This document shows, piece after piece, positions 23,400 through 61,452 of a DNA stretch of 64,000 nucleotides (position 1 is its first letter; each line of letters starts with the position of its first letter). The position numbers were made by a program, and so were the translations under genes. The DNA is taken from the NCBI RefSeq assembly GCF_035084215.1, contig NC_090363.1, forward strand, positions 9,424,001 to 9,488,000, in the 5' to 3' direction. Source of the stretch: Heptranchias perlo (taxonomy: Eukaryota). Under the pieces are notes generated by a model, which was not told the origin of the DNA, did no database searches, and was given only the letters and a program-made list of their open reading frames with translations.

Positions 23400-24080
23400 T
23401 GCTATCAGTCAGACCAAGTCCCACCCCCTGTGGAGTTGTAAATGAAAATGGAAGCGAAAAGACGGAGCACTTGTGGAGAGTCGCCGCGATTGGGGTAGTT
23501 GTGCATCAAAAGGCAGGATTTGAAGAGTTTGATGCCGTGAACCCAAGTGACTTTTGAGCTAGCGGATTAGTTTGGGTTTCGCTGGATGGAGCGACAGTTC
23601 ACTCTTCTATTGCCGCTGCGCCTCTTCCTCCACCTCCTGCTCCTGCTCCGGTCGCTTGATACAGAAGGTAAGGGAGGAACTAAAGTGGGGAAAGGGTTTA
23701 AAGATCGGCAGCGGAGAACCCAAGTGCCGCAGATCCTGCAAAGAGGGTCGGAAATGTGGGCCCACCTGAGTGACAAAATGTTACTCGTAACTTTCGTCAG
23801 CGGCTCAAGTTGCAGTGTGCGCATGCTCCTTATTGGGGGAGTTGGCGGGGGAGGTCAGAGGATCGCCTCTGGTCACCGAAATCCCTGCTGTAACAGTCCG
23901 GGTTTGTAATTGTTGTTGGAGGGGGTTCCTGGAGGGTTGATCTTGGGTAATGATGATCGTTAATTACGATGCTGAGCTCTTCTTCCTTCGCCTCCGCGTC
24001 CACTTCTTTGCCCCGCCCCCGCCCCCGCCCCTTTCTTCCATCTTCAGCATTCTCGTTCCCGCTGGCCTCTTACCCGCTCA
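23400..24080 (+). promoter_or_regulatory. CpG-rich promoter / first exon / first intron region of the Ig-5TM gene
   Basis: Visibly elevated CpG density relative to flanks, tandem GC boxes (gccccgcccccgcccccgccc, about 24010-24030), surrounds the ATG exon. Confidence 0.5.
23586..23667 (+). CDS. Ig-5TM receptor gene exon 1, signal peptide MERQFTLLLPLRLFLHLLLLLRSLDTE
   Basis: ATG plus Leu-rich leader, AAG|GTAAGG donor, 82 nt (phase 1), in a CpG-rich region, in frame with the IgV exons. Confidence 0.85.
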
Positions 24081-24082
24081 TG

Positions 24083-26121
24083 GGGCCCGATTTTACCAGG
24101 GGTGCGGGTACTCGGCGGGTAGGCCAGCGGGCGCGTTGTGAAATTAGTGGGTTGCCCGCGCGATCGTAGCAGGCAACACACTAATTGGATTCACTTACCT
24201 GCTCCTCCGGGGTCCGCGCTGCTGGTCTGCGCGTTGGGCGGGCTGCGCATGCGCAGTAACATCTGTCAGCTGGAGGCGCTCTATTTAAAGGGGCAGTCCT
24301 CCACTGACAGATGCTGCAACCAACAGAACAAATTACAGCATGGAGCAGCCCAGGGGGAAGGCTGCTCCCAGTTTAATGATGCCTCACCCCAGGTATCATC
24401 AGATGGGGTGAGGAGGAGGGGGAGGACAGAGCTCTTCCACCCGGCTGGCGGGAGGAAGCGGCCTGCCTCTGCCACCAAGAAGGCCTGGCTCGAGGTGGCA
24501 GAGGGGGTCACCTGCACCACCAACATATCGCCCACCTGCATACAGTGCAGGAGGCGCTCCAATGACCTCAGTAGATCAGCCACAGTGAGAACACGTAGTC
24601 TTTCTCCTACACTCCGTCTGCCACAACACTGCCCCCACCCCACATCTCCTTCGGCACCGCCAACACTACTCTGTCACATCACCCCTCATACCCACTCAAA
24701 CCCCATCCTCACCTTACCTGCACCTACTCACCTCGCGAGTACTCACCCCGCCACTAACACGCAACCCAATCCTCATCTAATCTCATGGCTCTATCCCATA
24801 CTCACCCTCTCGTGCATCTCCCTCACGGCCAGCCTCACTCAACCTGCCACCACCTGTGCTGCAGCCACAGGGCATGCATCACATATGTGCAGTAGGCAGC
24901 ATAAGGCAAACATGTCGTGAGCATGAAGGGGATGCACAAGGGTGTTTGAGGGTTTGTCATGGGTGTTACCTATATTGAATTTCAGAACAACTCACATCAC
25001 ACATTATATTGGCACCACCACTGCCATGTCTCCGCGAATCCTGTCTGTTTTGTGCAATAATGCCCGCTCCTGGGTATCCCTATGAGGACCCACCACTGAT
25101 GCCACCCATTGTGTTACTGCAGAGTAGGTGCAGGTGTATTTGCAGGGCTCTTCCGCGCAGACGACTGAGAGACATCGGCGGTGTACCCGGCTGCACCCTG
25201 GAAGGATGCGGAGGAGAAGTTGTGGAGGGCTGTGGTGACTTTGGCAGCGACAGGTAAGCAGATGGTGCTGGGGCCAGCCAGGAGCAGCTCGGCATGAAAG
25301 AGGCTGCAGATGTCCACGACTACATGTCGAGTGAATCTGCGCCTCCGTGTGCACTACTGCTCGGAGAGGTCCGGGGAGCTGCGCCTCGGTCTGTGGACCC
25401 TGTGGCGAGTGTAGTGCCCTCTGCGACGCGTCTCTCTTGCAGTAGCCCTCCCTCCTGCTGTACAGGTGGATGTGTCACAGCACTCTGTTGTGGAGCTCCA
25501 CGTGTCAGAGGTGGACGGCGTGGATGGCGAGGCTGGTGATGCTGTTCGCCCTCCGAGGGGGTCATGACTGCAGCTATGACGGCCCCCATCTGCAATATGG
25601 ACATCTGAGGGGGTCCGCAAGGTAGACACATGTCTCCGGACCCCGGGGTGTGTGTGCAGGTTGGTGACTTTGACCGTCAGGAGGTGGGTGATGGAGGCCA
25701 AACTTTGTCCCAAGTGACAGAGCGGCCTCCTGCAATGGGTGAGGGTCTCCCCCCCCCACCCCCTGTCAAATGGACCTTTGCAGCTGCCACAGGCTGACGG
25801 CTGCAACACGTCCAGTTCAACTAGGACTGTTTCCCCCAGTGTGTGAAACAGTCCCATGTTCTCCAAAATCACACACAGTCCCTTAATCAGGTCAGTTAAT
25901 GACCTGAACAAGCAAAATAAATACACTCAAGTGGCATCCCGCTGGCTTTAATTGCCTGCGGGATTCCCACCAGCGGGGGCTGCGCTCGCACCCCCGCACG
26001 TCATCGGGGAACCCGGAAGTGGTCGGGATCGTGGCGCGATCCGGTCACGTGCCTGGATATCGGGATTTTCGGGGCCCCCCCGCTGGAAACCCACAGGAAA
26101 CCCGACGGTAAAATCGAGCCC
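24083..26121. mobile_element. Non-autonomous Harbinger transposon in intron 1 of the Ig-5TM gene
   Basis: 15-bp TIR gggcccgattttacc / ggtaaaatcgagccc (1 mismatch), TSD ATG. Myb/SANT-like remnant on +, convergent HARBI1-like N-terminus (RRGHYTRHRVHRPRRSSPDLSEQ) on -. Homologous to 3864-5594. Confidence 0.88.
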
Positions 26122-26129
26122 ATGATCTT

Positions 26130-28210: not shown

Positions 28211-28453
28211 ACGCCCCCGTGTTCTTCCTTTCCGCGCGCCCCCCCCCCAAACCTTGGCCCCTTAGTATGGTCACTGTATCACAGTAAACATCAGATATCC
28301 AGGTCCTGAATTACCAATGAGTAACTCGATTGATATCTGCTGGTATAATGTGTACTCCCATTTGCTGCAGTTTTTCTTCACATTTACAGTTGTATTTCAT
28401 TGTTTAGTTGCCTCAGTTTAAATTATTAAATTTGCTTTTTTTATGTCAATCAG

Positions 28454-28759
28454 CTGGAATGAAAAATGTGTTTGGTGTCGTTGGTTCTTCAGTTTTACTG
28501 GATCCTGAATACGAAGCTGATCTCAGCAACAGTGATATTATATGGGAGTTCACTGCCAGCAACAAAAGCCCTGTAACAATTTTGGATTATGTACCAAATG
28601 GCCAGAAAGAGGAACCAAATAAACACTTCAAATCTCGTTTACATTTTAATGCTTCGAATGGCTCTTTGATGTTAAACAATTTTAAACCTAGCGACCAAGG
28701 GGTTTATACCATCACCGTAGATACACAAGTGCCAAGAAGAATAGATTTGAGGCTCACTG
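28454..28759 (+). CDS. Ig-5TM receptor exon 2, IgV domain A (CD2/SLAM/CEA-type, no B-F disulfide)
   Basis: cAG acceptor and G|GTAAGT donor, 306 nt, phase 1-1. Motifs GVVGSSVLL, IIW, FKSRLHF, GSLMLNN, SDQGVYTITV. Confidence 0.9.
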
Positions 28760-29574
28760 GTAAGTAGTTTCAATACTTTGTAGACTTTGAAAGTGATGCA
28801 GCTATTCACTACTTAAGAACTGTCTGTTGCAGAATAGGAACAGGAGTAGGCCATTCAGCCCCTCGAGCCTATTCCACCATTCCATAAAATCATGGCTGAT
28901 TTGTACCTCAACTCCATTTACCTACCTTTCTTCCCTATCCCCTGATACTCTTGCCCAACAAAAATCTATCGATCTCAATCTTGAAAATTACAATTGACCC
29001 AGTAGCCACAGCCTTGGACAATAGATTTCCACTACATAAGAAATAAGAGCAGGAGTAGGCCATACGGCCCCCGAGCCTGCTTTGCCATTCAATAAGATCA
29101 TGGTTGATCTTCTACCTCAACTCCACTGTGAAAAAATGCTCTGCTGACTTCACTACTAAATGGCCTAGCTCGTTTGCATGATGTAACTGCTCTTTGTACT
29201 GGTTAAATCAGCATCGACTTTTATTAAGCACCAACTTTATTTGCTAACTGCTTAGTGCTGAGATACAGCCTGGAAATTTGAGACGGGGAGGAGGATGGAT
29301 ATAAGGGGTTACAAGTGGTTTTACTGCATTTGGTTTTTTTAAGTCCACACACCCTGACATCCACATAGGTCCAAATCCTCAACAATCCCCACCCCAGTGC
29401 TTATACAAATGCAAGTTCTTTCTTTTATATATAATGCCTTTCACGACCTTAGGACGTCTAAAGCGCTTTACAGCCAATTAAGTACTTTTGAAGTGTAGTC
29501 ACCGTTGTAATATAGGAAACGTGGCATTCAATTTACACACAGCAAGATTCCCACAACCAACAATGTGATAATAC

Positions 29575-30075
29575 GACACAGAATTGCACTGATGTGCCAA
29601 GTGATGATGGACCTGGAAAAGAACATATGGTCATTGCATCTCCCGCTCCCAACAAAACCTCGTCTGTATAATATCTGCATCACTCCAATTCTCCTGTATG
29701 CATCGGAGACATGGACTGTCTCGCAAGTCGACTTGCCCAGCAGACCAGTGGTGTCTTCGCCATGTTCAGTGGTGTGACTACATCATCAATAGTCAGGTCA
29801 GAAAGATAACTGCCCAACAAAATGTCACAATTACCAAAAGGCGTTTATCGCTGTTTGAACACATGGCCAGGCTAGGCCATTCACGTGACACATCCAGGAC
29901 ATTCCGAGCCTGTCCTTTTTAAAGACCTGGAAACACTTCCCTAGAAGGCCAAGAAGCATCTGGCTCTCAACTGTTACGGCTGACCTCTGGTCCCTGAAAA
30001 CAAGGTTCTTCTGCGCCATGCGAAGAGCCAAGGACTGTGAAGGATGGAGATATTTGATCCACCAAGCATCACTAT
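29575..30075 (+). mobile_element. RTE-clade-like LINE 3' fragment
   Basis: TKPRLYNICITPILLYASETW and RRLSLFEHMARL motifs. Confidence 0.65.
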
Positions 30076-33170: not shown

Positions 33171-33425
33171 ATTACCAAAATTCCCTGATCTTTTGCGCTG
33201 GTTTGGCCAATTCCGTCTAGATTGCACTGATATTATTGGCGTAAACAAGTGGAAACTGATAGCCCCTGATAGCCAGGTCCTGAACTCCCAATGAGTAACT
33301 CCATGGATATCTGCTGGTATAACGTGTACTCCCATTGCTGTAGTTTTTCTTCACATTTACAGTTGTATTTCATTGTTTAGTTGCCACAGTTTAAATTATT
33401 AAATTTGCTTTTTTATGTCAATCAG

Positions 33426-33731
33426 CGGGAAAGAAAAATGTGTTTGGTGTCGTTGGTTCTTCAGTTTTACTGGATCCTGAATATGAAGCTGATCTCAGCA
33501 ACAGTGATATTTTATGGCTGTTCAATGGCAGCAATAAATCCCTTGTAACAATTTTGGATTACGTACCAAATGGCCAGAAAGAGGAACCAAATAAACACTT
33601 CAAATCTCGTTTATATTTTAATGCTTCGAATGGCTGTCTGATGTTAAACAATTTTAAACCCAGCGACCAAGGGATTTATACCATCACCGTGGATGCACAA
33701 GTGCTAAGAAGAATAGATTTGAGGCTCACTG
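33426..33731 (+). CDS. Ig-5TM receptor exon 3, IgV domain B (duplicate of exon 2)
   Basis: Same splice sites and 306-nt length. 21 nt and 11 aa differences from copy A by manual alignment; frame intact. Confidence 0.88.
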
Positions 33732-35264
33732 GTAAGTAGTTTCAATACTTTGTAGACTTTGAAAGTGATGCAGCTCATGAACTATTCACTACTTAAGAAC
33801 TGTCTGTTGCAGAATAGGAACAGGAGTAGGCCATTCAGCCTATTCCACCATTCCATAAAATCATGGCTGATTTGTACCTCAACTCCATTTACCTGCCTTT
33901 CTTCCATATCTCCTGATACCCTTGCCCAACAAAAAATCTGTCGATCTCAATCTTGAAAATTTCAATTGAACCAGTATCCACAGCCTCAGACAATAGATTT
34001 CCACTTCCCTTTGTGTGAAAAAATGCCCTGCAGATTTTACTATTAAATGGCCTAGCTCTAATTTTAAGATTATGTCCCCTTGTTCTGGATTCTCCCACCA
34101 GAGGAAGTGGTGGTAGTCGTCTTCATTCAAAGTTAAACTGAACCACTGATCCAATAGGAGAAAAAATGACATTATGGAAATTAAATGCAGCTGTTCAGTC
34201 AGCCTCCATTGCTGTAATATGTCTGTCATCCCATGGAGAGATCCACCAGGGATTGTGATCCACCATCCTTAGCTATATTGGTGAGGTGAAGGCAGGAGAA
34301 CTCTTTCCCAAATCAGAAAATTGGAAGTTTCTGGTAGGTGGAGGGGGAATCAGCAAAGGAGGGGAGAGGTGGGCAGTATCAGGATTGAGGTTGAATGTAA
34401 CATTTTGGGATTTCAGACCATGCTGCCAGCGAGGGACCTTGATGTAATATATCTTAAAAATGCTACTAATGAGCTAAATACAGAGGACAGCAGAGCTGGG
34501 AGATGTAGATTGAAATTCTCTGGGCAAGCTTGCTGCAAACAGTGAAAGACTCCAGTGCTATGAGAACGGTTTCCATTAGAACTCAGTAGGGGTCATTGCC
34601 AAGTTAGGCTGGTGGATTCTACCCCCTCGGGGAGAAGGGGGAGTAGTCAGTGTTAGTAAAACTTCCCTGGCATCAGGCTGATGGAAGAAAAGATGAAACT
34701 GCAGGGAGAGGACATTCTGCCCTGGGCTGAAGGCCATAATGCAGGGGTTCAGTTTCTTGCAGCCAGTGGTTGTACAGAAAATCAGATCTATTCTGAAAAT
34801 GCCAGTAGAATAGTGTGGTGTGCTCATTGGATTAATTGGGTTTCGATTCCAGCTGGTGCTCTTAATTTCGTTTGCCGTCTGGAAAATAAAGCAGCTTCAT
34901 GATTTACATCTGGCCTCTTACGTTTGGAAAAATTGGAGAGGAATGTGAAGTCATGTACAGAAGACAAAAAATATCCGGTTCAGGTTGCAGGAGGGTGCCA
35001 TTGTTACACCACAGGTTATGCTATTGCAGAAGTAGATATAGGGCAGTGTGAGTCAACTCTGACAAAGTAATGTGCTCAGTCCACTTACAAGAGCGACTGA
35101 TGATTAATGATTTTAAATTGATGACCCTCCCCTGTCACTGACTTCCCTAACCAGAGGAAATACTTTCCCATTAACTCAATCATAATTTTTAACAAAACTC
35201 TATGAAAATCTCCTTTAGCCTTTTTTTCTTCTTGTGGAATAAGTCCCAGACTCCCAAGTTCCAG

Positions 35265-35675
35265 GGCTTGTATTCCCTTGAGTATAGAAGATTGAAGGGT
35301 GATCTGATCGAGTTGTTTAAAATGTTAAAAGGATTGGATAGGATACATACGGAGAAACTATTTCCTTTGGTGGGTAATCAAGAACAAGGGGACCTAATCT
35401 TAAAATTAGAGCTAGGCCATTCAGTAGCGAAATTAGAAAGTACTTTTTCACACAAAGGGTAGTGGAAATCTGGTACTTCCCCCACCCCCAAAAGGCAGTG
35501 AATGCTGGGGGTCATTTGGAGCTTTCAAGACTGAGATTGATAGATTTTTGTTAGGAAACGATATCAAGGGAAATGGAGCAAAGGTGGGAAAATGGAGTTG
35601 AGGTGCAGATCAGCAATGATCTAATTGAATAGCAGAGCAGACTCTAGGGGCTGAATGTCCAACTTGTGTTCCGAT
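35265..35675 (+). mobile_element. CR1 3' fragment; similar + strand fragments at about 54600-55455 and 58070-58620
   Basis: GLYSLEYRRLKGDLIE motif and CR1 3' UTR. Confidence 0.8.
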
Positions 35676-36849
35676 TCTCTCCTCCTACAATAGTTTCTCA
35701 TTGCTAGTGTTATTCTTTTGAATCTAGGCGATACGTTCTCCATGGCTTTAATGTCTTTTCTGTAATGGAGTGCCCAAAACTGCACACGTTACTCTACAGT
35801 CTAACCATGATAAACTTATGATGAGCTCCTTGATCTTTAATTCTGTGTTTTTATTTATATGATCCAAAATACTATTAGCCTTTTTTTAATGGCTTTACCT
35901 ACCTGCACTTGCACTTCCAAGAAATTATGTATTTGCACCCATTTCTCCGTTCATTACACGCAATTCAAAGACACTGAACGTGCCATAGTCCCATTGTTTG
36001 TTTGTTTTTCCTCCCAAAATGAATTATCTTGCATCTTTTCACATTAAATTACATCCATCTGTCCATTCTGCCAACCTATTTATGTCCTCCTGAAATTTTT
36101 AATGGTCTACTTTTCTGTTTGTCCACCTCGACCTTTTGTGTCATCAGCAAATGTCAATATTGTGCTCCCTGCCCAAGATCAAACCGTCTATATATAGTGG
36201 ACCCAGCACTGAGCAACAATCCTTAACCCTTAGTTTCCTGTCAGCGAACCAATTTTCTATCCATGCATATTAGGAGAAGACATCAAAAGCTTGTTCAGAG
36301 GTGGGATTTAAGGAGAAGGTGGTGGAGAAGCAGAAGGGTTTAAGGAGGGAATGTCAGAGCGTGGGGCATAAGCGGCTGAAATTTAGAGGGGCAATGACAT
36401 GAAGAGATTCAAACACCAGGATGAGAATTTTAAATTTAAGGTATTGGGCGGGTGGGAGTCAATGTAGGTCAGTGAGGACAGGACTGATGGGTGACTGGGA
36501 CTTGGTAAGAGATAGGATACAAGGAGCAGAGTTATGGATGAGCTGAGGTTTACGGCGGGTGAAGGATGGGAAACCGGCGAGGAGAACATTAGGATCGTCA
36601 AGTCTGAAGGCGAGAAAGGTGATGGATGAAAATTTCCGCTGGGCTGAAGTCGGGACATAGACAGGCGATGTTACGGAGGTGGAGAGTCTGCAGTCTTTGT
36701 GATAGGATTATAGAGTAAGAAGTTCATCTGAGTCAAAGTACCTGTGAAGGACAGAGCTCTTATTAGTTAACTACACTAACATAATGTGAAGCAATAATGT
36801 TACCTTAATGCTCAAACCTGTTTAATTGTTGATGCATTATCTCCCACAG

Positions 36850-37119
36850 AACCACTGTCGGAACCTTTGATCATTAGTAATTCTACCTATGTGGATACCA
36901 CCGTTGAACTGATCTGTCATGTGCCTGTGGGGAAAGCGAGTTCCATTCAGTGGAGGAAAGATGACGAAGTGATAACGAATGGCCAACGTTATGAGTTAGT
37001 GCAAAACAACAGCAAGTTGATTATTTCTAAAGCCAACAAATCAGACTGCGGGATATACACCTGCACCGTTGAAAACCCTGTTAGCGAGAAGAATAATTCG
37101 TATTCTCTTTCTCTTTACA
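36850..37119 (+). CDS. Ig-5TM receptor exon 4, IgC2/I-set domain (EPLSEPLI...VELICH...IQWRKD...SDCGIYTCTVENPVS...SLSLY)
   Basis: ctcccacAG acceptor, A|GTAAGT donor, 270 nt, phase 1-1. Canonical C...W...DxGxYxC plus NPVS, typical of second domains in the CD2/CEA/HEPACAM families. Confidence 0.92.
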
Positions 37120-38174
37120 GTAAGTCAAGCCAGCCAGTGAATTCCATTTATTATTTAAAAACAATATTCCACCGACATCCCTTGCACTCAGCCTCGCTAA
37201 GGGCGTGGGAATAACGTCATATGTTATCATTCTCATTTTTATATGGACTCTCCCACAAATCACACAGAACATAAGAAATAAGAGCAGGAGTAAGCCATAT
37301 GGTCCCTCAAGCCTGCTCTGCCATTCAGTAAGATCATGGCTGATCTTCTACCTTAACTCCACTTTCCTTCCCTATCCCCAAATCCCTTGATTCCCGTAGT
37401 GTCCAAAAATCTATTGATCTCGGTCTTGAATATACTCAACAACTGAGCATCCACAGCCCCCTGGGGAGAGAATTTCAAAGATTCACAGCCCTCTGAGTGA
37501 AGAAGTTTTTCCTCATCTCTGTCCTAAATGGCCGATCCCTTATCTTGAGACTATGACCCCTAGTTCTAGACTCTCCAGCCAGGGGAAACAGCCTCTCCGC
37601 ATCTACCCTGTCACGCCTTCTAAGAATTTTATACGTTTTAATGTGATGACCTCTCATTTTTCTAAGCTCCAGAGAATATAGGCCCACTCAATTCAATCTC
37701 TCCTCACAGGACAACCCTCTTATCCCAGAAATTTCCATGGCAGGAAAAAGGGGTAGAATGGAAAATCGCTGGTAGTGCACAATTTCCCGATACACCTGGC
37801 ATTTACCAGGAGTGCCAAAGTGGAAAATCACCCTTTAAGTTAGCAGTGTGACTCGAGTGCAGACAGGATGCCCGATAAGGGAAATGCAAAATATCACACT
37901 GGCGCACTATGATACTCTCTTCTGATCGTGGAGTTGAGATATATTGTTGGCAGAGAGTCGAGTGTAATTTACAATGCATCTAAGTGTACGATATCCAGCC
38001 TGTTTGGGTTTGGGGCGGGGGGTCCTTGATACTAGCGTTGGATCCGTGAAGCGCGAAGTGTTCTGTTTTTTAGCACACAAGACCTTGATAACTACACGTA
38101 TAAAGGGAAAATGTCCCTGTTTTGTAATCTGGTTTGGAATGTAGTTTAAGTTTGAAATAATGTTTCTATTTCAG

Positions 38175-38291
38175 GTCTTACACAAATGCATCATTGCACT
38201 ATGGGATTGTACATTGCTACACTGATTACTGCTGGTATTGCAACCTTGATCAAAACAATCTCTTGCTTCGTTGACTGCATCAATAAAATAA
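38175..38291 (+). CDS. Ig-5TM receptor exon 5, TM1: SLTQMHHCTMGLYIATLITAGIATLIKTISCFVDCINKI
   Basis: tttctatttcAG acceptor, A|GTAAGA donor, 117 nt, phase 1-1, open, hydrophobic helix. Confidence 0.82.
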
Positions 38292-38486
38292 GTAAGAGAA
38301 ATTTGCTCTTTACACAACTTGATGTTGAGTTTAAAACTATTACAATTTAATAAGAGACCCTGTGAAACATTTAAATGTGAGACCTGTGACATAAATTCTG
38401 GACCTCAATTTTTTGAAATTATTGATTCAAATGTGTGAATATTCTCTGCTCGAGTAATGTTGATATCAATTTGCTTATTATTCAAG

Positions 38487-38588
38487 GTCATCAGTTTCTT
38501 CAACATGTACTACAAGCCTTGCAGTTTGCCCCAATGCTTTCATTTATCAGTCTTTTCGCTGCATCTGTGTGTTGGATATGGGCTGAAG
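38487..38588 (+). CDS. Ig-5TM receptor exon 6, TM2: SHQFLQHVLQALQFAPMLSFISLFAASVCWIWAE
   Basis: ttattcaAG acceptor, AAG|GTATTG donor, 102 nt, phase 1-1, inside ORF 38435..38764. Confidence 0.75.
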
Positions 38589-38658
38589 GTATTGTATGTG
38601 CTCCTGTTACCTTTCTCTCTGTTAGTAATTGCATTTCTGTCAATACTTCTGACATCCG

Positions 38659-38892
38659 GGGGGTGATTTTAACCCCCAAGAACAGGTGGGTTGAGGGCGG
38701 GTGGGAGTTGAAAGTAGTTGTTTTTTGGGTCGCGACCGCAACCTGGTTTTATTTCCAGGTTTAACTTGGCGTGTAAAAGTACAGGCTTCCCACTGGGAAT
38801 GCAAAGTCCAAAAATTTTGCAGTTGCGACCCTAAAACAACGACTATTTTCAACTCCCAAACCCACCCATTCTTGGGGGTTAAAATCACCCCC
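38659..38892. mobile_element. PIF/Harbinger-type MITE, copy 2, 70 bp downstream of the TM2 exon
   Basis: Same TIRs and internal sequence as 1943-2184; TSD not preserved. Confidence 0.85.
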
Positions 38893-39434
38893 ACTATATT
38901 CCAGTGTAGTGGTTATGGTATTAGGCTATAGAACTCACAGGTTGTGAGTTCTAATCTCACATGGCAAACTGAATTTGAATTCAATAAATTTGCCAATTTG
39001 TGGGCTAGTACCAAAAAATAACTCTGAAAGCCGTCATTTTATTGTAAAAACTCAACTAATTCACTACGGTTGGGAATTTCCTCGGTGCTGCTCCTGCTTC
39101 GCCATCATAACTTCATTGTTCTTTTGACAAAATTATGGGGTGGAGCGGAAATAGCTCCGAAGAAATTCCTGTTCTAAAGATCATTCACCTCTTATGTGAC
39201 TACAAGTCCCACATTATACGGATACCCTCTGAAGTGGACTAAAAAACCATTTTGTTTTAAAACGTAACACTTAAGATAACTCATTCCCAAATCCTTTCCG
39301 TGGAAAAAAAAAAGTAAAAAATCCTGAAACGTGACAGTCTCCCTTGTGTTTGTGACCAGAACTGGATAAAATATTCAAGGTGTGGGCTGACTAGAGAACA
39401 CGAGTCAATCAAATATTATAATGAGGAGGAAAAC

Positions 39435-42400
39435 ATGTTGTCCAGGTCTTGCTGCATGCGGGCACGGACTGCTTCATTATCTGAGGGGTTGCAAATGCAA
39501 CTGAACACTGTGCAATCATCAGCGAACATCCCTATTTCTGACCTTATGATGGAGGGAAGGTCATTGATGAAGCAGCTGAAGATCGTTGGGCCTAGGACAC
39601 TGCCCTGAGGAACTCCTGCAGCAATGTCCTGGGGCTGAGATGATTGGCCTCCAACAACCACTACCATCTTCCTTTGTGCTAGGTATGACTCCAGCCACTG
39701 GAGAGTTTTCCCCCTGATTCCCATTGACTTCAGTTTTACTAGGGCTCCTTGGTGCCACACTCTGTTAAATGCTGCCTTGATGTCAAGGGCAATTACTCTC
39801 GCCTCACCTCTGGAATTCAGCTCTTTTGTCCATGTTTGGACCAAGGCTGTAATGAGGTCAGGAGCCGAGTGGACCTGGCGGAATCCAAACTGATCATCGG
39901 TGAGCAGGTTATTTATTGGTGAGTAAGTGCCGCTTGATGGAAGGTGTCATCGACAGTGCTATCACTTTGCTGCTGATTGAGAGTAAGCTGGTGGGGCGGT
40001 AATTGGCCGGATTGGATTTGTCCTGCATTTTGTGGACAGGACATACCTGGGCAATATTCCAGATTGTCGGGTAGATGCCAGTGTTGTAGCTGTACTGGAA
40101 CAGCTTGGCTAGAGGCACAGCTCGTTCTGGAGCACAAGTCTTCATTACTACAGCTGGGATGTTGTCGGGGCCCATAGCCTTTGCTGTATCCAGTGCACTC
40201 AGCCGTTTCTTGATATCACGTGGAGTGAATCGAATTGGCTGAAGACTGGCTTCTGTGACGGTATGAGGCCGAGATGGATCATCCGCTCGGCACTTCTGGC
40301 TGAAGATGGTTGCAAACACTTCAGCCTTGTCTTTTGTACTCACGTGCTGGACTCCATCATTGAGGATGGGGATGTTTACAGAGCCTCCTCTTCCCGTTAG
40401 TTGTTTAATTGTCCACCACAATTTACGACTGGATGTGGCAGGACTGCAGAGCTTTGATCTGATCCATTGGTTGTGGAATCGCTTAGCTCTGTCCATAGCA
40501 TGTTGCTTCTGCTGTTTAGCATGCATGTAGTCCTGAGTTGTAGCTTCACCAGGTTGACACCTCATTTTTAGGTACGCCTGGTGCTGCTCCTGGCATGCTT
40601 TTCTGCACTCCTCATTGAACCAGGGTTGATCCCCTGGCTTGTTGGTCATGTTAGAGTGAGGAATATGCCGGGCCACGAGGTTATAGATTGTGCTGGAATA
40701 CAAATCTGCTGCTTGATGTGAGCATTTGTTGGACAATCTGTACTGCAGTGTTGTAGCCCTATCTTCATCACTTGCTCATATCAAGTACTGCTCCCAATGA
40801 GAGTGCAGGATACTAAACTTACCATGTAGTGAAAATTCACCACTGGAAGCCTGGTCAACAGTAAGGTCAGAGCATGTGGAGTCAGGGACAAGTAGCAGAA
40901 TGGATAGCAAGCTGGCTTTTTTTTTATTCATTCATGGGATGTGGGCGTCGCTGGCGAGGCGAGCATTTGTTGCCCATCCCTAATTGCCCTTGAGAAGGTG
41001 GTGGTGAGCCTTCTTGAACCACTGCAGTCCATGTGGTGAAGGTTCTCCCACAGTGCTGTTAGGAAGGGAGGACCAGGATTTTGACCCAGCGACGATGCAG
41101 GAACGGTGATGTATTTCCAAGTCGGGATGGTGTTTGACTTGGAGGGGAACGTGCAGGTGGTGTTGTTCCCATGTGCCTGCTGCCCTTGTCCTTCTAGGTG
41201 GTAGAGGTTGCGGGTTTGGGAGGTGCTTTTGAAGAAGCCTTGGCGAGTTGCTGCAGTGCATCCTGTGGATGGTACACACTGCAGTCACTGTGCGCCGGTG
41301 GTGAAGGGAGTGAATGTTTAGGGTGGTGGATGGGGTGCCAGTCAAGCGGGCTGCTTTGTCCTGGATGGTGTTGAGCTTCTTGAGTGTTGGAGCTGCACTC
41401 ATCCAGGCAAGTGGAGAGTATTCCGTCACACCCCTGACTTGTGCCTTTTAGATGATGAAAAGGCTTTGGGGAGTCAGGAGGTGAGTTACTTGCTGCAGAA
41501 TACCCAGCCTCTGACCTACTCTTGTAGTCACAGTATTTATGTGGCTGGTCCAGTTAAGTTTCTGGTCAATGGTGACCCCCAGGATGTTGATGGTGGGGGA
41601 TTCGGCGATGGTAATGCCGTTGAATGTCAAGGGGAGGTGGTTAGACTCTCTTGTTGGAGATGGTCATTGCCTGGCACTTGTCTGTCGCGAATGTTATTTG
41701 CCCGTATCAGCCCAAGCCTGGATGTTGTCCAGGTCTTGCTGCATGCGGGCACGGACTGCTTCATTATCTGAGGGGTTGCAAATGCAACTGAACACTGTGC
41801 AATCATCAGCGAACATCCCTATTTCTGACCTTATGATGGAGGGAAGGTCATTGATGAAGCAGCTGAAGATCGTTGGGCCTAGGACACTGCCCTGAGGAAC
41901 TCCTGCAGCAATGTCCTGGGGCTGAGATGATTGGCCTCCAACAACCACTACCATCTTCCTTTGTGCTAGGTATGACTCCAGCCACTGGAGAGTTTTCCCC
42001 CTGATTCCCATTGACTTCAGTTTTACTAGGGCTCCTTGGTGCCACACTCTGTTAAATGCTGCCTTGATGTCAAGGGCAATTACTCTCGCCTCACCTCTGG
42101 AATTCAGCTCTTTTGTCCATGTTTGGACCAAGGCTGTAATGAGGTCAGGAGCCGAGTGGACCTGGCGGAATCCAAACTGATCATCGGTGAGCAGGTTATT
42201 TATTGGTGAGTAAGTGCCGCTTGATGGAAGGTGTCATCGACAGTGCTATCACTTTGCTGCTGATTGAGAGTAAGCTGGTGGGGCGGTAATTGGCCGGATT
42301 GGATTTGTCCTGCATTTTGTGGACAGGACATACCTGGGCAATATTCCAGATTGTCGGGTAGATGCCAGTGTTGTAGCTGTACTGGAACAGCTTGGCTAGA

Positions 42401-45287: not shown

Positions 45288-46320
45288 TCTGATGGCCCAC
45301 AGCACCTCATGGAGGCCCAGTTTTGAGCTGCCAGATCTGTTCTGAATCTATCCCAATTAGCACGGTGATAGTGCCACACAACAACGTTGGATGGTGTCCT
45401 CAGTGCGAAGACTTCATCTGCACGAGGATTGTGCGGTGGTCACTCCTACCAATACTGTCATGGACAGATGCATCTGCGACAGGTAGATTGATGAGGACGA
45501 GGTCAAGTAGGTTTTTCCCTCGTGTTGGTTCACTCACCACCTGCCGCAGGCCCAGTCTGGCAGCTATGTCCTTCAAGGGCTCGGTCAGTAGTGTTGCTAC
45601 CGAGCCACTCTTGATGATGGGCATTGAAGTCCCCCACCCAGAGTACGTTCTGTACCCTTGCTACCCTCGGTGCTTCCTCCAAGTAGTGCTTAACATGGAG
45701 GAGGACTGATTCATCAGCTGAGGGAGGACGGTAGGTGGTAATCAGCAGGAGGTTTCCTTGCCCATGTTTGGCTTGATGCCATGAGATGTCATGGGGTCCG
45801 GAGTCAATGTTGAGGACTCATAGGGCCACTCCCTCCTGACTGTATATCACTGTACCGCCACCTCTGGTGGGTCTGCCCTGCCGGTGGGACAGGACATACC
45901 CAGGAATGGTGATGGAAGAGTCCGGGACGTTGGCTGAAAGGTATGATTCTGTGAGTATGGCTATGTCAGGCTGTTTGCTTGACTAGTCTGTGGGACAGCT
46001 CTCCCAATTTTGGCACAAATCCCCAGATGTTCGTGAGGAGGACTTTGCAGGCTTGGTTTGCCTTAGTCGTGTCTGGTGTCTCGTGGTCTGTCCGGTTTTA
46101 TTCTTTATTATGACTTTTTTTAAGCGATATTTTACAACTGAGTGGCTTGCTAGGCCATTTCAGAGGGCAAGAATCAACCACATTGCTGTGGGTCTGGAGT
46201 CATATGTAGGCCAGACCGGGTAAGGACGGCAGGTTTCATTACCTAAAGGGCATTAGTGAACCAGATAAGTTTTTATGACAATCCGGTAGTTTCATGGCCA
46301 CCATTATTAATACTAGTTTT
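43204..46320 (-). mobile_element. Long copy of the second Jockey-group LINE family (endonuclease + RT, frameshifted)
   Basis: PTRGKNLLDLVL...SDH endonuclease motif, [22 protein letters not shown], poly-T/ttca tail. Confidence 0.88.
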
Positions 46321-47009
46321 TTTTTAATTCCAGATTTTATTTAATTGAATTCCCCCAGCTGGCATGGCGGGATTTGAACTCATGATTCTGGATTACTAGT
46401 CTAATCACATAACCACTATGCTACTGTACCACTGCTGCAGAACAGAAAACAGAGGTTAAGAGTAGCTATGCAGACTGGCAAAAGGTGGCAAGTGATGTCC
46501 CACAAGGATCAGTGCTGGGACACTGTTGTTCACAATTTGCATTAATGATTTGGACTCTGGAATCAGAAACACAATTTGAAAATTTGCGGATGACATCAAA
46601 TTGGGTTTATAGTGAAGACTGTGACAAAATACATGGGGATTTTAATAAACTTGCAGAATGGGAGTGTAATTGGCAAATGAATTTGAATATAGATAAATGT
46701 GAAGAGTTACATTTTGGTAGGAAGAATAAGGAGGCCGCATACTGGAAAATAAGAGTAAGTGGGGTAAAGCAGCAAAGGGATCTCGGGGTACAGATACACA
46801 AATCACTAAAAGTAGCGACGCAGGTTAATAAGGCCATAATAGCAGCAAATATTGCACTGAGGTTGATTTCTAGAGGGATAGAATTGAGGAGCAGAGAAGT
46901 TATGTTGTATTGAACATTGGTTAGACCACATTTGGAGTACTGCGCACGGTTCTGGTCTCCATAGGAAGGTTACAGAACGGATGAAGGCCATTCAGCCTAT
47001 CAAGTCTGT

Positions 47010-47559
47010 TGTAGCGACCATCTCGGTCGCCATTCAAATCGCCCATGCTGAGTTCGGAGAGCCTTTTGTAAGCAGAGTTTATTCGAGCATATGCAGGGGA
47101 AAGCCTTAGTGAGCCAAGGGTCTCTCCGATTAAACAATTTCATCAGGCTTTATACACGGTACGGTTGACACTGACAGGCAGCAGTTTGTTGACCTCACGC
47201 ATGTGACCAACTAGGTCCCGTCTATACCTTGCCCATAATCATCATGGAGTCTCGCACGTGTACAGGAGCAGATGTTCCTGTTATCTCAATTGTCCTAAGC
47301 TCTTACTTCTGCCTTTCAGTGGTTTACAATTCCCCTTATCCGTGTCCGAGGTCTCCCATTATCATTATCTTAGTCCACTGTTCTTGTTACAAGGTTTCGT
47401 GAAAACATCTTTATGACAACTGCTACGGTTAAACTGCTAACACTATGCATTAGTCCTTTTTGGTCAAGCTTCCTATTATGCCTTGCGGTTACACTTATTG
47501 TCTCGTAGCTAGCATAACTTCAGTATACATACAAGGATTATACACTCACACCCCTCACA
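47010..47559 (-). mobile_element. Possible solo LTR
   Basis: TGT...ACA termini, AATAAA on - strand near 47078, inserted in a CR1 tail; no clean TSD. Confidence 0.35.
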
Positions 47560-47591
47560 TCAGCATTAATATTGCAAAGCCCATAACTCTA

Positions 47592-49866
47592 GTTTTTTTT
47601 TTATTCATTCATGGGATGTGGGCGACCCTGGCGAGGCCGGCATTTATTGCCCATCCCTAATTGCCCTAGAGAAGGTGGTGGTGAGCTGCCTTCTTGAACC
47701 ACTGCAGTCCGTGTGGTGAAGGTACTCCCACAGTGCTGTTAGGAAGGGAGTTCCAGGATTTTGACCCAGCGACGATGAAGGAACGGCGATATATTTCCAA
47801 GTCGGGATGGTGTGTGACTTAGAGGAGAACGTGCAGGTGGTGTTCCCATGTGTCTGCTGCTCTTGTCCTTCTAGGTGGTAAAGGTCGCGTGTTTGGGAGG
47901 AGCTGACGAAGAAGCCTTGGCGAGTTGCTGCAGTGCATCCTGTGGATGGTACACACTGCAGCCACTGTGCGCCGGTGGTGAAGGGAGTGAATGTTTAGGG
48001 TGGTGGATGGGGTGCCAATCAAGCGAGCTGCTTTGTCCTGGATGGTGTCGAGCTTCTTGAGTGTTGTTGGAGCTGCACTCATCCAAGCAAGTGGAGAGTA
48101 TTCCATCACACTCCTGACTTATGCCTTGTAGATGATGGAACGGCTTTGGGGAGTCAGGAGGTGAGTCACTTGCTGCAGAATACCCAGCCTCTGACCTGCT
48201 CTTGTAGCCACAGTATTTATATGGCTGGTCCAGTTAAGTTTCTGGTCAATGGTGACCCCCAGGATGTTGATGGTGGGGGATTCGGCGATGGTAATGCCGT
48301 TGAATGTCAAGGGGGGCTGGTTAGACTCTCTTGTTGGAGATGGTCATTGCCTGGCACTTCTCCGGCGCGAATGTTACTTGCCACTTATCAGCCCAAGCCT
48401 GGATGTTGTCCAGGTCTTGCTGCATGCGGGCTCGGACTGCTTCATTATTTGAGCGGTTGCGAATGGAACTGATCACTGTGCAATCATCAGCGAACATCCC
48501 TATTTCTGACCTTATGATGGAGGGTAGGTCATTGATGAAGCAGCTAAAGATGGTTGGGCCCAGGACACTGCCCTGAGGAACTCCTGCAGCAGTGCCCTGG
48601 GGCTGAGATGATTGGCCTCCAACAACCACTACCATCTTCCTTTGTGCTAGGTATGACTCCAGCCACTGGAGAGTTTTCCCCCTGATTCCCATTGACTTCA
48701 ATTTTACTCGGTCAAATGCTGCCTTGATGTCAAGGGCAGTCACTCTCATCTCACCTCTGGAATTCAGCTCTTTTGTCTATGTTTGGACCAAGGCTGTAAT
48801 GAGGTCTGGAGCCGAGTGGTCCTGGCGGAACCCAAACTGAGCATCGGTGAGCAGGTTATTGGTGCCGCTTGATCGCACTGTCGACGACACCTTCCATCAC
48901 TTTGCTGATGTTCGAGAGTTGACTGATGGGGCGGTAATTGGCCGGATTGGATTTGTCCTGCTTTTTGTGGACAGGACATACCTGGGCAATTTTCCACATT
49001 GTCTGGTAGATGCCAGTATTGTAGCTGTACTGGAACAGCTTGGCTAGAGGCGCAGCTAGTTTTGGAGCACAAGTCATCAGCACTGCAGCTGGGATGTTGT
49101 CAGGGCCCATAGCCTTTGCTGTATGCAGTGCACTCAGCCGTTTCTTGATATCACGTGGAGTGAATTGAATTGGCTGAAGACTGGCTTCTGTGATGGTGGG
49201 GATATCGGGAGGAGGCCGAGATGGATCATCCGCTCGGCACTTCTGGCTGAAGATGGTTGCAAAGGCTTCAGCCTTGTCTTTTGCACTCACGTGCTGGACT
49301 CCGCCATTATTGAGGATGGGGATGTTTGCAGAGCCTCTTCCTCCCGTTAGTTGTTTAATTGTCCACCACCATTCACGACTGGATGTGGCAGGACTGCAGA
49401 GCTTTGATCTGATCTGTTGGTTGTGGAATCGCTTAGCTCTGTCTATAGCATGTTGCTTCCGCTGTTTAGCATGCATGTGGTCCTGAGTTGTAGCTTCACC
49501 AGGTTGGCACCTCATTTTTGGGTACGCCGGGTGCTGCTCCTGGCATGCTCTTCTACACTCCTCATTGAACCAGGGTTGATCCCCTGGTTTGTTGGTAATG
49601 GTAGAGTGAGGAATATGCCGGGCCATGAGGTTACAGATTGTGCTGGAATACAATTCTGCTGCTGCTGATGGCCCACAGTGCCTCATGGATGCCCAGTTTT
49701 GTGCTGCTAGATCTGTTCTGAATCTATTCCCATTTAGCACTGTGATAGTGCCACACAACACGTTGGATGGTGTCCTCAGTGTGAAGACGGGACTTCACCT
49801 CCACGAGGACTGTGCGGTGGTCACTCCTACCAATACTGTCAAGGACAGATGCATTTGCGACAGGTG
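47592..49866 (-). mobile_element. Second-family LINE copy; older copies at about 57010-57830 and 59000-60070
   Basis: ORFs 47819, 48321 and 48856 are homologous to 43267, 43981 and 44483. Confidence 0.88.
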
Positions 49867-51067: not shown

Positions 51068-51193
51068 GATGTTCTAGAATCAAAGTGTTTGTGTTGGTGC
51101 TTTCGTGTCTTCTGATCATATTAACCACGTTACCGGCTTTTAGTAGGATGACCTGTGCCCCAAAATGGTTAAAAAAGATCTTGTCGACCAAAC
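51068..51193 (+). CDS. Ig-5TM receptor exon 7, TM3: GCSRIKVFVLVLSCLLIILTTLPAFSRMTCAPKWLKKILSTK
   Basis: T-rich tract plus aatAG acceptor, C|GTAAGT donor, 126 nt, phase 1-1. Strongly hydrophobic helix followed by a basic loop. Confidence 0.82.
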
Positions 51194-52737: not shown

Positions 52738-53082
52738 TATACACTGACATAGGGATCACAACCTTGGTATAAAAAAGGTAATTGGGCAAATGTTCCTGTT
52801 CCTGCTTCTGGGACTATTGGATCTCCTGGGCACAGCAAATACAGGAGAATCAGATGGAGAGGAGCACACATCAGGGAGGCCATCTGATTTTCTCTCCATT
52901 AATATAAATGATGGAAAATTGAATGGGCTCTGTTAGGGGAGTATGCTTCTCCCAGCCCATTATTCCTGTATTCACTGTATCCAGACGATCTAATAGCCCC
53001 AAACACCGGAAAACCATCCCTGTATTTTTCTTGACCACTTGCATTCCCCAGAGGCACATGTGGCAGCAGACAGATCAGCATT

Positions 53083-53104
53083 TGTGTGTGTGTGTGTGTG
53101 TGTG
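53083..53104. repeat. (TG)11 microsatellite upstream of the TM4 exon acceptor
   Basis: Direct reading. Confidence 0.9.
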
Positions 53105-53156
53105 AGAGATGAAAACTCCTGTCCTCTCTGATTCTTTCTGTTTTATTTGTTACCAG

Positions 53157-53252
53157 TTTGCAGGGCAATACTGGGTGCAGTAACTCCATTGGGTGAAATC
53201 ACTGTGATATGTGCATCGGGTATCCTGCTTGCGGAAGTAATGAAACAAGCTG
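53157..53252 (+). CDS. Ig-5TM receptor exon 8, TM4: LCRAILGAVTPLGEITVICASGILLAEVMKQA
   Basis: Long pyrimidine tract plus ccAG acceptor, G|GTGAGT donor, 96 nt, phase 1-1, open. Confidence 0.8.
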
Positions 53253-56200: not shown

Positions 56201-56415
56201 AAAAGGTTGGGAGCCAAGGATTTCTAGTGACTTAACTGAGAGGCCTCCAATGGAGGGTATAGTTAATTTTTCTAATGATGTGTGTTGTACATATGTCAAA
56301 GGAATATATTACATATTTATTGTACTTATTTTGAATATAACAATTTATCAGTCTTCCAACTAATGTGTTGATTGGAACTGCAGTTTGATTATTACATGAT
56401 AATATCTATTGGCAG

Positions 56416-56517
56416 ATAAAGGATGTGATCCAGCTATCAATCTACAATCAACTATAATATTAGCTGTGATGGGGCCACTGGTTCTTCTGGTTGCAAGCTT
56501 TGCAGTTTACATCGTAT
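56416..56517 (+). CDS. Ig-5TM receptor exon 9, extracellular loop and TM5: DKGCDPAINLQSTIILAVMGPLVLLVASFAVYIV
   Basis: ttggcAG acceptor, T|GTAAGT donor, 102 nt, phase 1-1, hydrophobic helix. Confidence 0.82.
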
Positions 56518-59169: not shown

Positions 59170-59409
59170 GGGGGTGATTTTAACCCCCAAGAACGGGTGA
59201 GTTGGGGTCGGGTGGGAATTGAAAATAATTTTTTTTGGGTCGCGACTGCAAAATTTTCAGACTTTGCATTCCCAGTGGGAAGCGTGTACTTTTACGCACC
59301 CAAGTTAAACCCGGAAATAAAGCCGGGTTATGGTTGTGACCCAAAAAAAACTATTTTCAACTCCCACCCGCCCCCAACCCATCTGTTCTTGGGGGTTAAA
59401 ATCACCCCC
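59170..59409. mobile_element. PIF/Harbinger-type MITE, copy 3 (inverted), inserted in an old LINE
   Basis: Same TIRs, TSD TAT, internal sequence is the reverse complement of copies 1 and 2. Confidence 0.85.
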
Positions 59410-60471
59410 TATATGTCCAAGTCAGGATGGTGTATGACTTGGAGATGATGGTCTCCCCACTACATTGCTGCTCTAGTCCTTTTTGCTGGTGGCACTTGCA
59501 AGAGAGGGAGGTGCTGTTGAAGTAAACTTGGTGAGTTGCTGGAGTACACTATAGATCATACATACTGCAACCACCATGCGCTGGTGATGGAGGGATTGGA
59601 TATTAAGTCCAGTGATAGGGGCGTGGATCAAATGAACTGCTCTGTGTTGGATGGTGTTAAACTTCTTTAGTGCTATGGCTGCACCCATTCAGGTGACTGG
59701 TGAGTATTCCATCAGACTCCTGATTTGAGTCTTGAACATGGTGGAGAGGGTTTGAGGTGCCAGGAGATGAGCCACTCGTCAGAGCACCCAGCCCTACTCT
59801 GCCCTGCTGTAGTAGCCATGATGTTGATATGGTTGGTTCAGTTGAGCAGTGGTGACCTGCAAGATGTTGATGGTGGGGGACTGATGGTGCTGCTGGAAGG
59901 TCGGGGAGAAATTTCTGGACTTCATGTTTGAGATGGTCATTATTCAGCGCTTCTGCAGTGGAAAGGTTAACCTGCCACTTGTCAGCCCAGCCTGGATGTT
60001 GTAATCTGACATGAGCTGCTTAATTATCGTTAGTTATGAATGGAGCTGAATATTGTAAAATCATCAGTAATTTATTCTAATAGCAGCCTTAGTTTTCTTT
60101 GGCTTTTTCTTACCACACTCCCATCTTTTGACTGGCAAATAGGAATGAGCCAGTTGTATAATGGTCAGTTAACCTGAGACTACAGGATAATATCCTACGG
60201 CTTTGAAATTACACTTGAGTGTAACATATTCTTGTGAAATTCCATTGTTTGCCACTTTAACGGAGGCATTAAAATAAGCAGGTCAGTTAATATAAGAGAC
60301 ATGGGAGTTTCATATGAGCTGTTAAACCTTGGTACACTGGATGGTAAAATTTGATGGACAAAGAGTTTTGGGAATGAATTGATGGACTTGTATTCTAATC
60401 ATCCATTAGTGAAAACCTTTGCTCGGTTCATTATTGCATCGATGCAACTCATTGTATGTTTATATCAACAG

Positions 60472-60551
60472 ATACAAAATGGAAAAAATGGACAACTAGA
60501 GCTCTGCCTACATATCCCAGTGTAAACGATCCTGATGAGTTTCATTGTATT
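60472..60551 (+). CDS. Ig-5TM receptor exon 10, cytoplasmic: YTKWKKWTTRALPTYPSVNDPDEFHCI
   Basis: caacAG acceptor, ATT|GTAAGT donor, 80 nt, phase 1 to 0. Basic stop-transfer KWKK directly follows TM5. Confidence 0.78.
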
Positions 60552-61347
60552 GTAAGTATTGGGATCAAATACAAGTGACAAGTTAGAAATACAGCTGTTG
60601 CTCTGAACCTTTCTGAAAATGAATGTTCCTGTAGTTTTCACACATTTATTTTAGTCAGAAATGGAAGATTCTGTTTAATTTTGCTGATTGAGTGAGTAAT
60701 TTGTGTGGAGAATGGGAAAGGCTCCAGTATCTGCTAAGCAAAAGGCATGCACACTACAGTGCTTACTGGAAGTAGAGGTGTTTGGTCCTGGTGATACACA
60801 GATAAATGGGATTATTTCTCATAAGCTATGCTCTGTTGAACATTTAAAAGGGAAGTGAAACAAAACCAAATCTCACCTTGTAGGCAAAATGTACAAGATG
60901 AAATTAAAGAACTTAAACTCTTGAATTTTAATGCCAGAAAGTTGAAAATTTATTAAAAGATATATGCCTTCATCAAATGCCAATAAATGATCGAATGTAA
61001 AAAACCTGAACTTTAGAAAATAGGGGAAAAGTACTGAAAGTGCTGCATGTAGAGAGATGATTTAAATTGCTGTATTAAACTCCATATATTACTCTGGTCC
61101 ATAGTAAACACATTTATTGTTAAACCTAAACGGGTCATATTTCTTTTTTTAAAAAAAACTTGACTAATAAAGCTTGTTGTTCAGGTCTAAAAGGAAAAAA
61201 CTTGATTGAAGGCATCATTAAAAAGAGACAAATCTCATTCATTTTACCATGTGTTACTAATTGTTAATTTTACATTTTTGTGTATTTAATAAAAATTAGC
61301 CTTTTCTTTTGCAGTTTACAGACATTTTGATTGTCTTTTTTCTGTAG

Positions 61348-61452
61348 GAGTTGAATTCAGCACCACCGCTACCAGTGAAGAACAACCTTCAATCTAGGAC
61401 CACTGCTACCAGTGAAGAACAACCTTCAATCTCGGACCACTGCTACCAGTGA
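61348..61452 (+). CDS. Ig-5TM receptor terminal coding exon: ELNSAPPLPVKNNLQSRTTATSEEQPSISDHCYQ*
   Basis: tcttttttctgtAG acceptor, phase 0, open to TGA at 61450-61452. A competing acceptor ends at 61314. Confidence 0.65.
   Translation, partial: ELNSAPPLPVKNNLQSRTTATSEEQPSISDHCYQ

Follow-up and report, generated by a model that had tools for sequence, protein, structure and literature searches.

Does a single shark gene place immunoglobulin (Ig) domains of the CD2/SLAM type on a membrane domain of five helices, as CD47 does with its own Ig domain? The question is raised by a 64-kb window of the genome of the sevengill shark Heptranchias perlo (the window being the whole stretch of DNA that was analyzed; coordinates are window positions throughout), in which the interval 23586-61452 had been predicted from the letters alone to encode an Ig-superfamily receptor with a V-(V)-C2 ectodomain on a five-transmembrane (5TM), CD47-like membrane domain. 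Our preferred answer, to which we assign a probability of about 0.6, is that the locus is a real spliced gene for a five-span surface glycoprotein with a signal peptide, V-V-C2 Ig domains outside the cell, five helices, basic loops and a poorly conserved tail, and that the protein is one of a clustered family of elasmobranchs.

Eleven exons were found on the + strand at the sites given by the original prediction, with an AG acceptor on every exon but exon 1 and a GT donor on every exon but the last. They join in frame over 1689 nt into 563 codons; exons 2-9 are of phase 1-1, with lengths of 117, 102, 126, 96 and 102 nt for the five hydrophobic ones. When the V1 exon was used as a phmmer query against 1.84 billion proteins, 350 of them matched at E<=0.001, and the top match (E 5.2e-120) was RefSeq XP_067830133.1, 'uncharacterized protein [Heptranchias perlo]', 563 aa, called P0001 below. 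Every exon translation is an exact substring of P0001, in the right order and with one split-codon residue between neighbours, and both PKWLKKILSTKLCR and TKWKKW are present in it. The exons were searched one by one with Pfam, and the joined model was taken from P0001. The exons (TM, transmembrane) are the following:

Exon 1, 23586..23667, + strand: start codon and signal peptide; 27 codons plus 1 base; donor GT; P0001 residues 1-27; hydrophobic peak 6-24; model helix 8-21.
Exon 2, 28454..28759, + strand: first V-set Ig domain (V1); 306 nt, phase 1-1; P0001 residues 29-129; Pfam V-set E 1.3e-10 and a weak Receptor_2B4 match.
Exon 3, 33426..33731, + strand: second V-set Ig domain (V2), a copy of V1; P0001 residues 131-231; Pfam V-set E 6.9e-9.
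Exon 4, 36850..37119, + strand: membrane-proximal I/C2-set Ig domain; P0001 residues 233-321; Pfam I-set E 8.9e-15; cysteine pair C254/C303, extra C298.
Exon 5, 38175..38291, + strand: TM helix 1 and start of cytoplasmic loop 1; 117 nt, phase 1-1; P0001 residues 323-360; peak 329-347; helix 325-356.
Exon 6, 38487..38588, + strand: TM helix 2; 102 nt, phase 1-1; P0001 residues 362-394; peak 374-392; the Gly395 codon spans the donor; tblastn matches from 8-10 relatives.
Exon 7, 51068..51193, + strand: TM helix 3 and basic cytoplasmic loop 2; 126 nt, phase 1-1; P0001 residues 396-436; peak 401-419, score 2.66; helix 398-422.
Exon 8, 53157..53252, + strand: TM helix 4 with Glu450 and the near-invariant Ser457; 96 nt, phase 1-1; P0001 residues 438-468; tblastn matches from 5-6 relatives.
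Exon 9, 56416..56517, + strand: outer loop 2 with the conserved Cys472, and TM helix 5; 102 nt, phase 1-1; P0001 residues 470-502; peak 481-499; tblastn matches from 7-9 relatives.
Exon 10, 60472..60551, + strand: basic membrane-adjacent tail, YPSV, acidic DPDE; 80 nt, phase 1 to 0; P0001 residues 504-529.
Exon 11, 61348..61452, + strand: last 34 codons and stop codon, coding to 61449; P0001 residues 530-563; mostly a 37-bp tandem repeat.

The predicted order of signal peptide, V, V, C2, five TM segments and tail is the one on which Pfam, hydropathy and AlphaFold agree. The five TM exons and the two tail exons gave no genuine Pfam match; a DUF7394 hit on them (E 0.16) was at chance level and was discarded. 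A scan of 37000-61500 returned further hydrophobic open reading frames (ORFs) of like size bordered by AG and GT, at 47269-47385, 59783-59899, 59747-59848 and 59747-59872, and gave other possible ends for two of the genuine exons. Because such ORFs occur by chance, the exon pattern alone is no proof of the gene; proof comes from the match to relatives in other species and from spliced contigs.

Four runs of one sample, kept as contigs, were placed on 33380-38650. The runs hold 0.10-0.25 of the sampled words of 36800-38700, a stretch of which the three exons make up 0.26, and the contigs cover exons and repeats, with the other intron bins at depth 0 (e.g., 37780-38131 and 38308-38483 in all four runs). 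Such coverage of exons with introns at depth 0 is an RNA-like pattern. The GT..AG joint 33730>36849 (V2>C2) was present in one of the four runs (X1), the joint 37119>38175 (C2>TM1) in three and the joint 38291>38487 (TM1>TM2) in all four. A single contig of 1291 nt (X1-3) contains, with 0 differences, the 3' part of V2, C2, TM1 and TM2 and then continues for 653 nt past the aligned stretch, and a second contig of 888 nt continues for 480 nt beyond it, compared with the 509 nt of coding sequence expected after TM2. Finally, a joint reaching back by 306 nt was found in three of the four runs on contigs with eight other letters; the seven of these eight places that are listed coincide with V1/V2 differences and carry the V1 letters, which means that the end of V1 is spliced to the first base of V2 and that the V exons are used in tandem. 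The reads thus place the V1>V2>C2>TM1>TM2 joints at the predicted sites, the joints past TM2 lying outside the aligned stretch.

The ectodomain is of the CD2/SLAM type, as had been proposed. V1 has no cysteine pair and V2 has a single cysteine (C200), the third Ig domain is classed by Pfam as I-set or Ig_3 with the canonical pair C254/C303, and Receptor_2B4 scores 31.2 bits in P0001, above its cut-off of 21; among 45 family members, Receptor_2B4 matches occur in 23 and weak SLAM matches in nine. All ten N-x-S/T sequons of P0001 fall in the ectodomain (residues 64-313). Between the two V exons, 21 of 306 bases are different (6.9%), a higher share than in their duplicated flanks (4.1-4.6%), with 11 amino-acid-changing and seven silent codons and many of the changes at exon positions 87-118. 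The V exon may be under relaxed or diversifying selection, although the numbers are too small to tell. Each V exon lies inside a duplicated block of ~745 bp (28300-29040 and 33270-34015).

P0001 shares with CD2/SLAM proteins the N-terminal V-set domain without a canonical cysteine pair followed by a C2-type domain, and its family shares with them the arrangement in multigene clusters. CD2/SLAM members are single-pass or glycosylphosphatidylinositol (GPI)-anchored, whereas P0001 has five spans, and the immunoreceptor tyrosine-based switch motif (ITSM) present in SLAM receptors is found in none of 45 family tails. HEPACAM/CEACAM-type proteins are likewise single-pass or GPI-anchored. The family has V plus C2 Ig domains in common with HEPACAM-, CEACAM- and CXADR-like proteins and receives their labels for this reason, but these labels ignore the 5TM module that sets P0001 apart from single-pass or GPI-anchored HEPACAM/CEACAM proteins.

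Hydropathy peaks of P0001 lie at residues 329-347, 374-392, 401-419, 444-462 and 481-499. AlphaFold, run with the family alignment of 42-45 rows, modelled five long helices together with a short one on the cytoplasmic side, and did so for the module alone (predicted local distance difference test score, pLDDT, 78.4; predicted template modelling score, pTM, 0.62) and for the whole protein (pLDDT 77.6). The three inner segments of P0001 contain two, six and four Lys+Arg compared with zero, two and two in the outer ones, and the predicted inner segments are richer in these residues in all 45 aligned rows, in keeping with the positive-inside topology that had been read from the shark sequence. The two cytoplasmic loops, of 26 and 24 residues, are basic. 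Because hydropathy, AlphaFold, charge bias and the placement of the sequons agree, the predicted topology with five spans, the N-terminus outside and the C-terminus inside (N-out/C-in) is strongly supported.

Several positions of the module are conserved. The cysteine in the loop between TM4 and TM5 (Cys472 in P0001) is present in 36 of 38 aligned rows and the extra cysteine of the C2 domain (C298) in 32 of 36. In the 35 relatives that have a C2 domain, both cysteines occur together in 30 and both are missing in two (one shark and one ray); the loop cysteine stands alone in two, which are isoforms of one gene, and one relative lacks the loop. The glycine just before helix III (Gly395) is invariant in alignments A4 and A5 and near-invariant in A2, and a serine in TM4 (S141 of alignment A2; Ser457) is near-invariant.

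The C-terminal tail looks young and little constrained. In P0001, YPSV and an acidic stretch are its only notable features, and the tails of the 45 rows contain one motif resembling the immunoreceptor tyrosine-based inhibitory motif (ITIM), no ITSM and no immunoreceptor tyrosine-based activation motif (ITAM). A tail like that of exon 10 was found in P0008, P0017 and P0031. The C-terminal ~30 residues are encoded by a tandem repeat (61362-61457; period 37, 2.6 copies, 96% matches) whose period is no multiple of three, and AlphaFold gives pLDDT <50 at residues 518-563.

Of 159 stored proteins, phmmer recovered the membrane module of P0001 in 21 and jackhmmer in 48, colinear over the five helices. 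A word-filtered homology search with the TM region of P0001 returned P0001 alone among 2714 candidates, passing over relatives that reach E 1e-33 in local phmmer. Names were taken for 30 clusters, with 18 of the 48 module proteins left without a name look-up, and all 30 named clusters are elasmobranch, as are 27 further matches to profile A5 and one to profile A4. Profile A5 scored Ig columns too, so that its 27 matches show the distribution of the family and not of the TM module alone; the TM-only profile A4, searched against a 5.8-billion library, returned one further catshark protein and no CD47-sized relative. In total, 17 species are represented, all sharks or rays; no member from outside the elasmobranchs turned up, chimaeras and bony fishes having had no dedicated search. 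In several species (e.g., Pristis, Hypanus, Mustelus), a single chromosome-sized contig carries four to six loci, and tblastn with the relatives detected no further family exon in the window. Of the two origins initially considered, an Ig-5TM receptor family in cartilaginous fish is supported, the module being present in 48 of the 159 proteins and all named ones being elasmobranch; that P0001 belongs to a fast-evolving multigene family of sharks and rays, with its genes in clusters, is strongly supported.

The relatives are labelled 'HEPACAM family member 2-like', 'CXADR-like membrane protein', 'CEACAM1-like', 'CD48 antigen-like', 'CD276 antigen homolog', 'contactin-6-like', 'VEGFR2-like' or 'uncharacterized'. 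The labels follow the Ig part, just as had been forecast for an automated HEPACAM/CEACAM/SLAM-type annotation blind to the 5TM module. The sequence is public but unnamed, and no description of an Ig-5TM family in cartilaginous fish was found in the open-access literature and bioRxiv (supplements excluded). Two Pfam entries that the local Pfam copy lacks are given in precomputed lists, PF28321.1 for P0001 and six relatives and PF28299.1 for P0012, and might already cover part of the family proteins.

Family architectures comprise V-5TM, V-C2-5TM, V-V-C2-5TM and V-V-5TM. The ray models P0002, P0010, P0003 and P0154 (702-941 aa) have two or three module matches, and in P0002 further V domains come after the first module; such models either fuse adjacent genes or represent genuine proteins that cross the membrane ten or more times. 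In a structural search of Atlas, a cluster of 110 chordate Ig proteins matched residues 322-501 (TM score 0.73), and a search of Atlas by features gave no usable match. Identities to P0001 were as follows:

Sharks: V 51-69%, C2 40-79%, TM module 28-49%.
Rays: V 38-55%, C2 36-47%, TM module 12-21%.

The membrane module (residues 322-503) diverges faster than the Ig domains in every comparison, the reverse of what receptors under ligand-driven selection usually show.

How close does this design come to CD47? Fenalti et al. (PMC8410850) present CD47 as the single 5-TM receptor of the immune system, with a unique fold and an inter-domain disulfide, Cys15-Cys245, and PMC8410850 and PMC10902115 state that this bond is needed for ligand binding and signalling. 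Fenalti et al. also report only seven residues shared by human and viral CD47, which include the inter-domain disulfide and the glycine atop helix III, and no similar protein in searches with the CD47 membrane domain. CD47 and the P0001 family are alike in their Ig ectodomain, five membrane helices and N-out/C-in topology, in a short variable tail without tyrosine signalling motifs, in a conserved cysteine of the TM4-TM5 outer loop and in a conserved glycine where helix III begins on the outer side. They differ in that CD47 has one disulfide-bonded IgV domain, whereas P0001 has V-V-C2 with V domains lacking a disulfide; in that the presumed Ig tether cysteine lies before the F strand of the C2 domain in P0001 but near the N-terminus of the V domain in CD47; in that the cytoplasmic loops of P0001 (26 and 24 residues) have about twice the length of those of CD47; and in that CD47 is described as the only 5-TM receptor of the immune system, whereas P0001 belongs to a multigene family.

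By analogy with these systems, the distal V domains would engage a partner on a second cell, in the manner of CD2/SLAM-type V domains, and the C2 domain would be tied to the helix bundle by a disulfide between C298 and C472 of the TM4-TM5 loop. Such a tie would fix the orientation of the ectodomain, like Cys15-Cys245 in CD47. The protein would act as a displayed ligand or marker, or signal sideways via its membrane bundle; since the family tails are almost without ITIM, ITSM or ITAM, a displayed ligand, marker or lateral partner is likelier than a classical tyrosine-motif receptor. The multigene, clustered and fast-changing character of the family suggests immune-type recognition.

Several points weigh against the reading of the locus as a spliced gene for a tethered, immune-type Ig-5TM protein. 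The RefSeq model is a computer prediction that may rest on the same reads, and by itself it is no proof of expression. That the four runs are RNA is a guess from their exon-only coverage and is not on record, and the TM2>TM3, TM3>TM4, TM4>TM5 and tail joints rest on the lengths of the contig remainders and on conservation in relatives, without being seen directly. One low-depth contig (X3, depth 3.6) runs through the TM2 donor into the intron (38589-38650), with one differing letter at 38592, and could come from an unspliced precursor or from a truncated two-span isoform. We infer the C298-C472 pairing from co-occurrence among related sequences, and the immune role is a guess from domain type and family behaviour. 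Lastly, neither the five TM exons nor any of ten full-length proteins (E<=1) matched the CD47 transmembrane family PF04549, and a profile built from six TM modules had no match at E<=10 among 177,635 sequences of the Protein Data Bank (PDB).

Other searches for CD47 gave a similar picture. PF04549 is not among the 25 Pfam families listed for the 45 members, of which the last listed have two members each, so that at most two members could match it, and it is absent from the precomputed Pfam lists of 26 different proteins; a single TM exon had no match among PDB sequences at E<=10. V-set_CD47 (PF08204) gave weak, sub-cut-off matches on the membrane-proximal Ig domain in 11 of the 45 members (best E 0.0013). 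With the module model, Foldseek found nothing in the PDB at E<=0.001 (best 0.1) and no CD47 chain among the 49 matches listed, helix bundles being hard to compare, and with the whole 563-aa model it returned only multi-Ig proteins. In BFVD, which should contain poxvirus CD47-like models, none was among the 50 matches listed and none of the matches reached E<=0.001 (best 0.056). A wide VIA-align search had no CD47 chain among its 50 matches listed, although CD47 may be present in the wide library as an Ig-only chain; VIA, applied to Foldseek's top 995 chains, had no CD47 among 50 matches listed, and Atlas had no CD47 match for the membrane module. These negatives are weak because helix bundles compare poorly, because the module diverges very fast and because the solved CD47 has a BRIL insert (a construct described in PMC8410850). 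Of the proposed CD47-like membrane domain, what stands is the architecture, an Ig ectodomain on five spans with N-out/C-in topology; a sequence or fold match did not appear. The design matches CD47, from which the family may or may not descend.

Could the gene be an artefact, a read-through or wrongly joined prediction in which Ig exons of a single-pass CD2/SLAM/HEPACAM-type gene were fused to the hydrophobic exons of another gene or to chance repeat ORFs? The chance AG/GT-bordered hydrophobic ORFs of the same size in the region, the TM2-TM3 intron of 12.5 kb full of copies of long interspersed nuclear elements (LINEs), the TM3-TM5 joints not seen directly and the fused look of some ray models with two or three modules would all fit such a fusion. 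Yet one contig joins V2, C2, TM1 and TM2, the V-C2-5TM order recurs in independent models of 17 species, relatives conserve the exons of TM3, TM4 and TM5, including a GC motif and the TM4 serine, and the window holds no other family exon, so we regard this explanation as already close to refuted. It is also quite improbable that V1 and V2 are mutually exclusive alternative exons of a main product V-C2-5TM of ~461 aa. In its favor, the exons arose by a recent duplication (~93% identical) and a single V domain is present in most relatives, but contigs with V1 letters are joined to the first V2 base in three of four runs, the 1291-nt contig runs from V2 into C2, and two-V relatives exist (P0016, P0004, P0005). 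Single-V isoforms may occur besides the V-V form, since contigs drop rare variants.

With the V-V-C2-5TM gene retained, the remaining explanations concern its origin and use. The family could be a true, very diverged relative of CD47 that inherited the 5TM module and the Ig tether and rebuilt its ectodomain with CD2/SLAM-type V exons, an origin that we consider unlikely but worth serious attention. The shared design of Ig, five TM helices, N-out/C-in topology and short variable tail speaks for it, as do the co-variation of the TM4-TM5 loop cysteine with the Ig cysteine, the weak V-set_CD47 matches in 11 of 45 members and the shark-ray module identity of 12-21%, at which similarity is expected to fall below detection. 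Each TM helix of the P0001 gene also has its own exon; if exons 1 and 2 of CD47 encode the signal peptide and IgV, a split that we assume here, five exons are left for the CD47 membrane domain. According to PMC10902115, human CD47 has 13 exons, with tail variants made by skipping exons 8-13, and according to PMC8410850, a glycine like the near-invariant one before helix III is in the set shared by human and viral CD47. Against this descent stand the lack of CD47 in the PF04549, PDB profile, Foldseek, VIA-align, BFVD and Atlas searches, a tether cysteine placed elsewhere in the fold, in a C2 and not a V domain, and cytoplasmic loops about twice as long. A bolder proposal, speculative and on present evidence improbable, is that sharks and rays made the CD47 design into a recognition system, in which phagocytes or natural killer-like cells, through paired Ig receptors that inhibit or activate, would read dozens of clustered, fast-diverging Ig-5TM genes' products as variable 'self' markers or ligands, as SIRP reads CD47, the Ig-to-loop disulfide setting the pose of the binding domain. 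In that event, CD47 would be all that is left of a once larger five-pass Ig class in jawed vertebrates, or would echo it by convergence. We consider it very improbable that the protein works chiefly through its five-helix module, as a small transporter, a channel subunit or a redox protein for instance, with the Ig domains only regulating or localising it.

The five-span glycoprotein that we favor adds to CD47 a second set of Ig-on-five-helix proteins, a clustered family in 17 elasmobranch species that has stood under misleading labels (HEPACAM-like, contactin-like) in pipelines that take a protein's name from its Ig domains and overlook new membrane modules. Should the module be related to CD47, the family would be the first outgroup for CD47, for the origin of its membrane domain and for which of its residues matter; if it is unrelated, a disulfide-tied Ig on a five-helix base would have arisen twice, a general lesson on how such a base can serve a binding domain. 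Whichever holds, immune-type recognition in the oldest living jawed vertebrates has in this family a concrete candidate that can be put to the test.

The introns of the gene are rich in repeats. In the 12.5-kb TM2-TM3 intron, LINE fragments occupy 39416-49761 on the - strand; ORFs with identical translations recur at 2287-bp offsets, corresponding to three copies, with a further diverged copy at 47600-49761, and one of the ORFs matches the RVT_1 reverse transcriptase (E 1.7e-20). These copies may reflect tandem duplication or an assembly effect. Three other intronic repeats (33732-34259, 35140-35667 and 37252-37779) reach a word depth of 10^3 to 6x10^4 in the four runs, compared with ~3-16 for the exons, and yield many spurious joints between repeat copies; they look like highly transcribed interspersed repeats.

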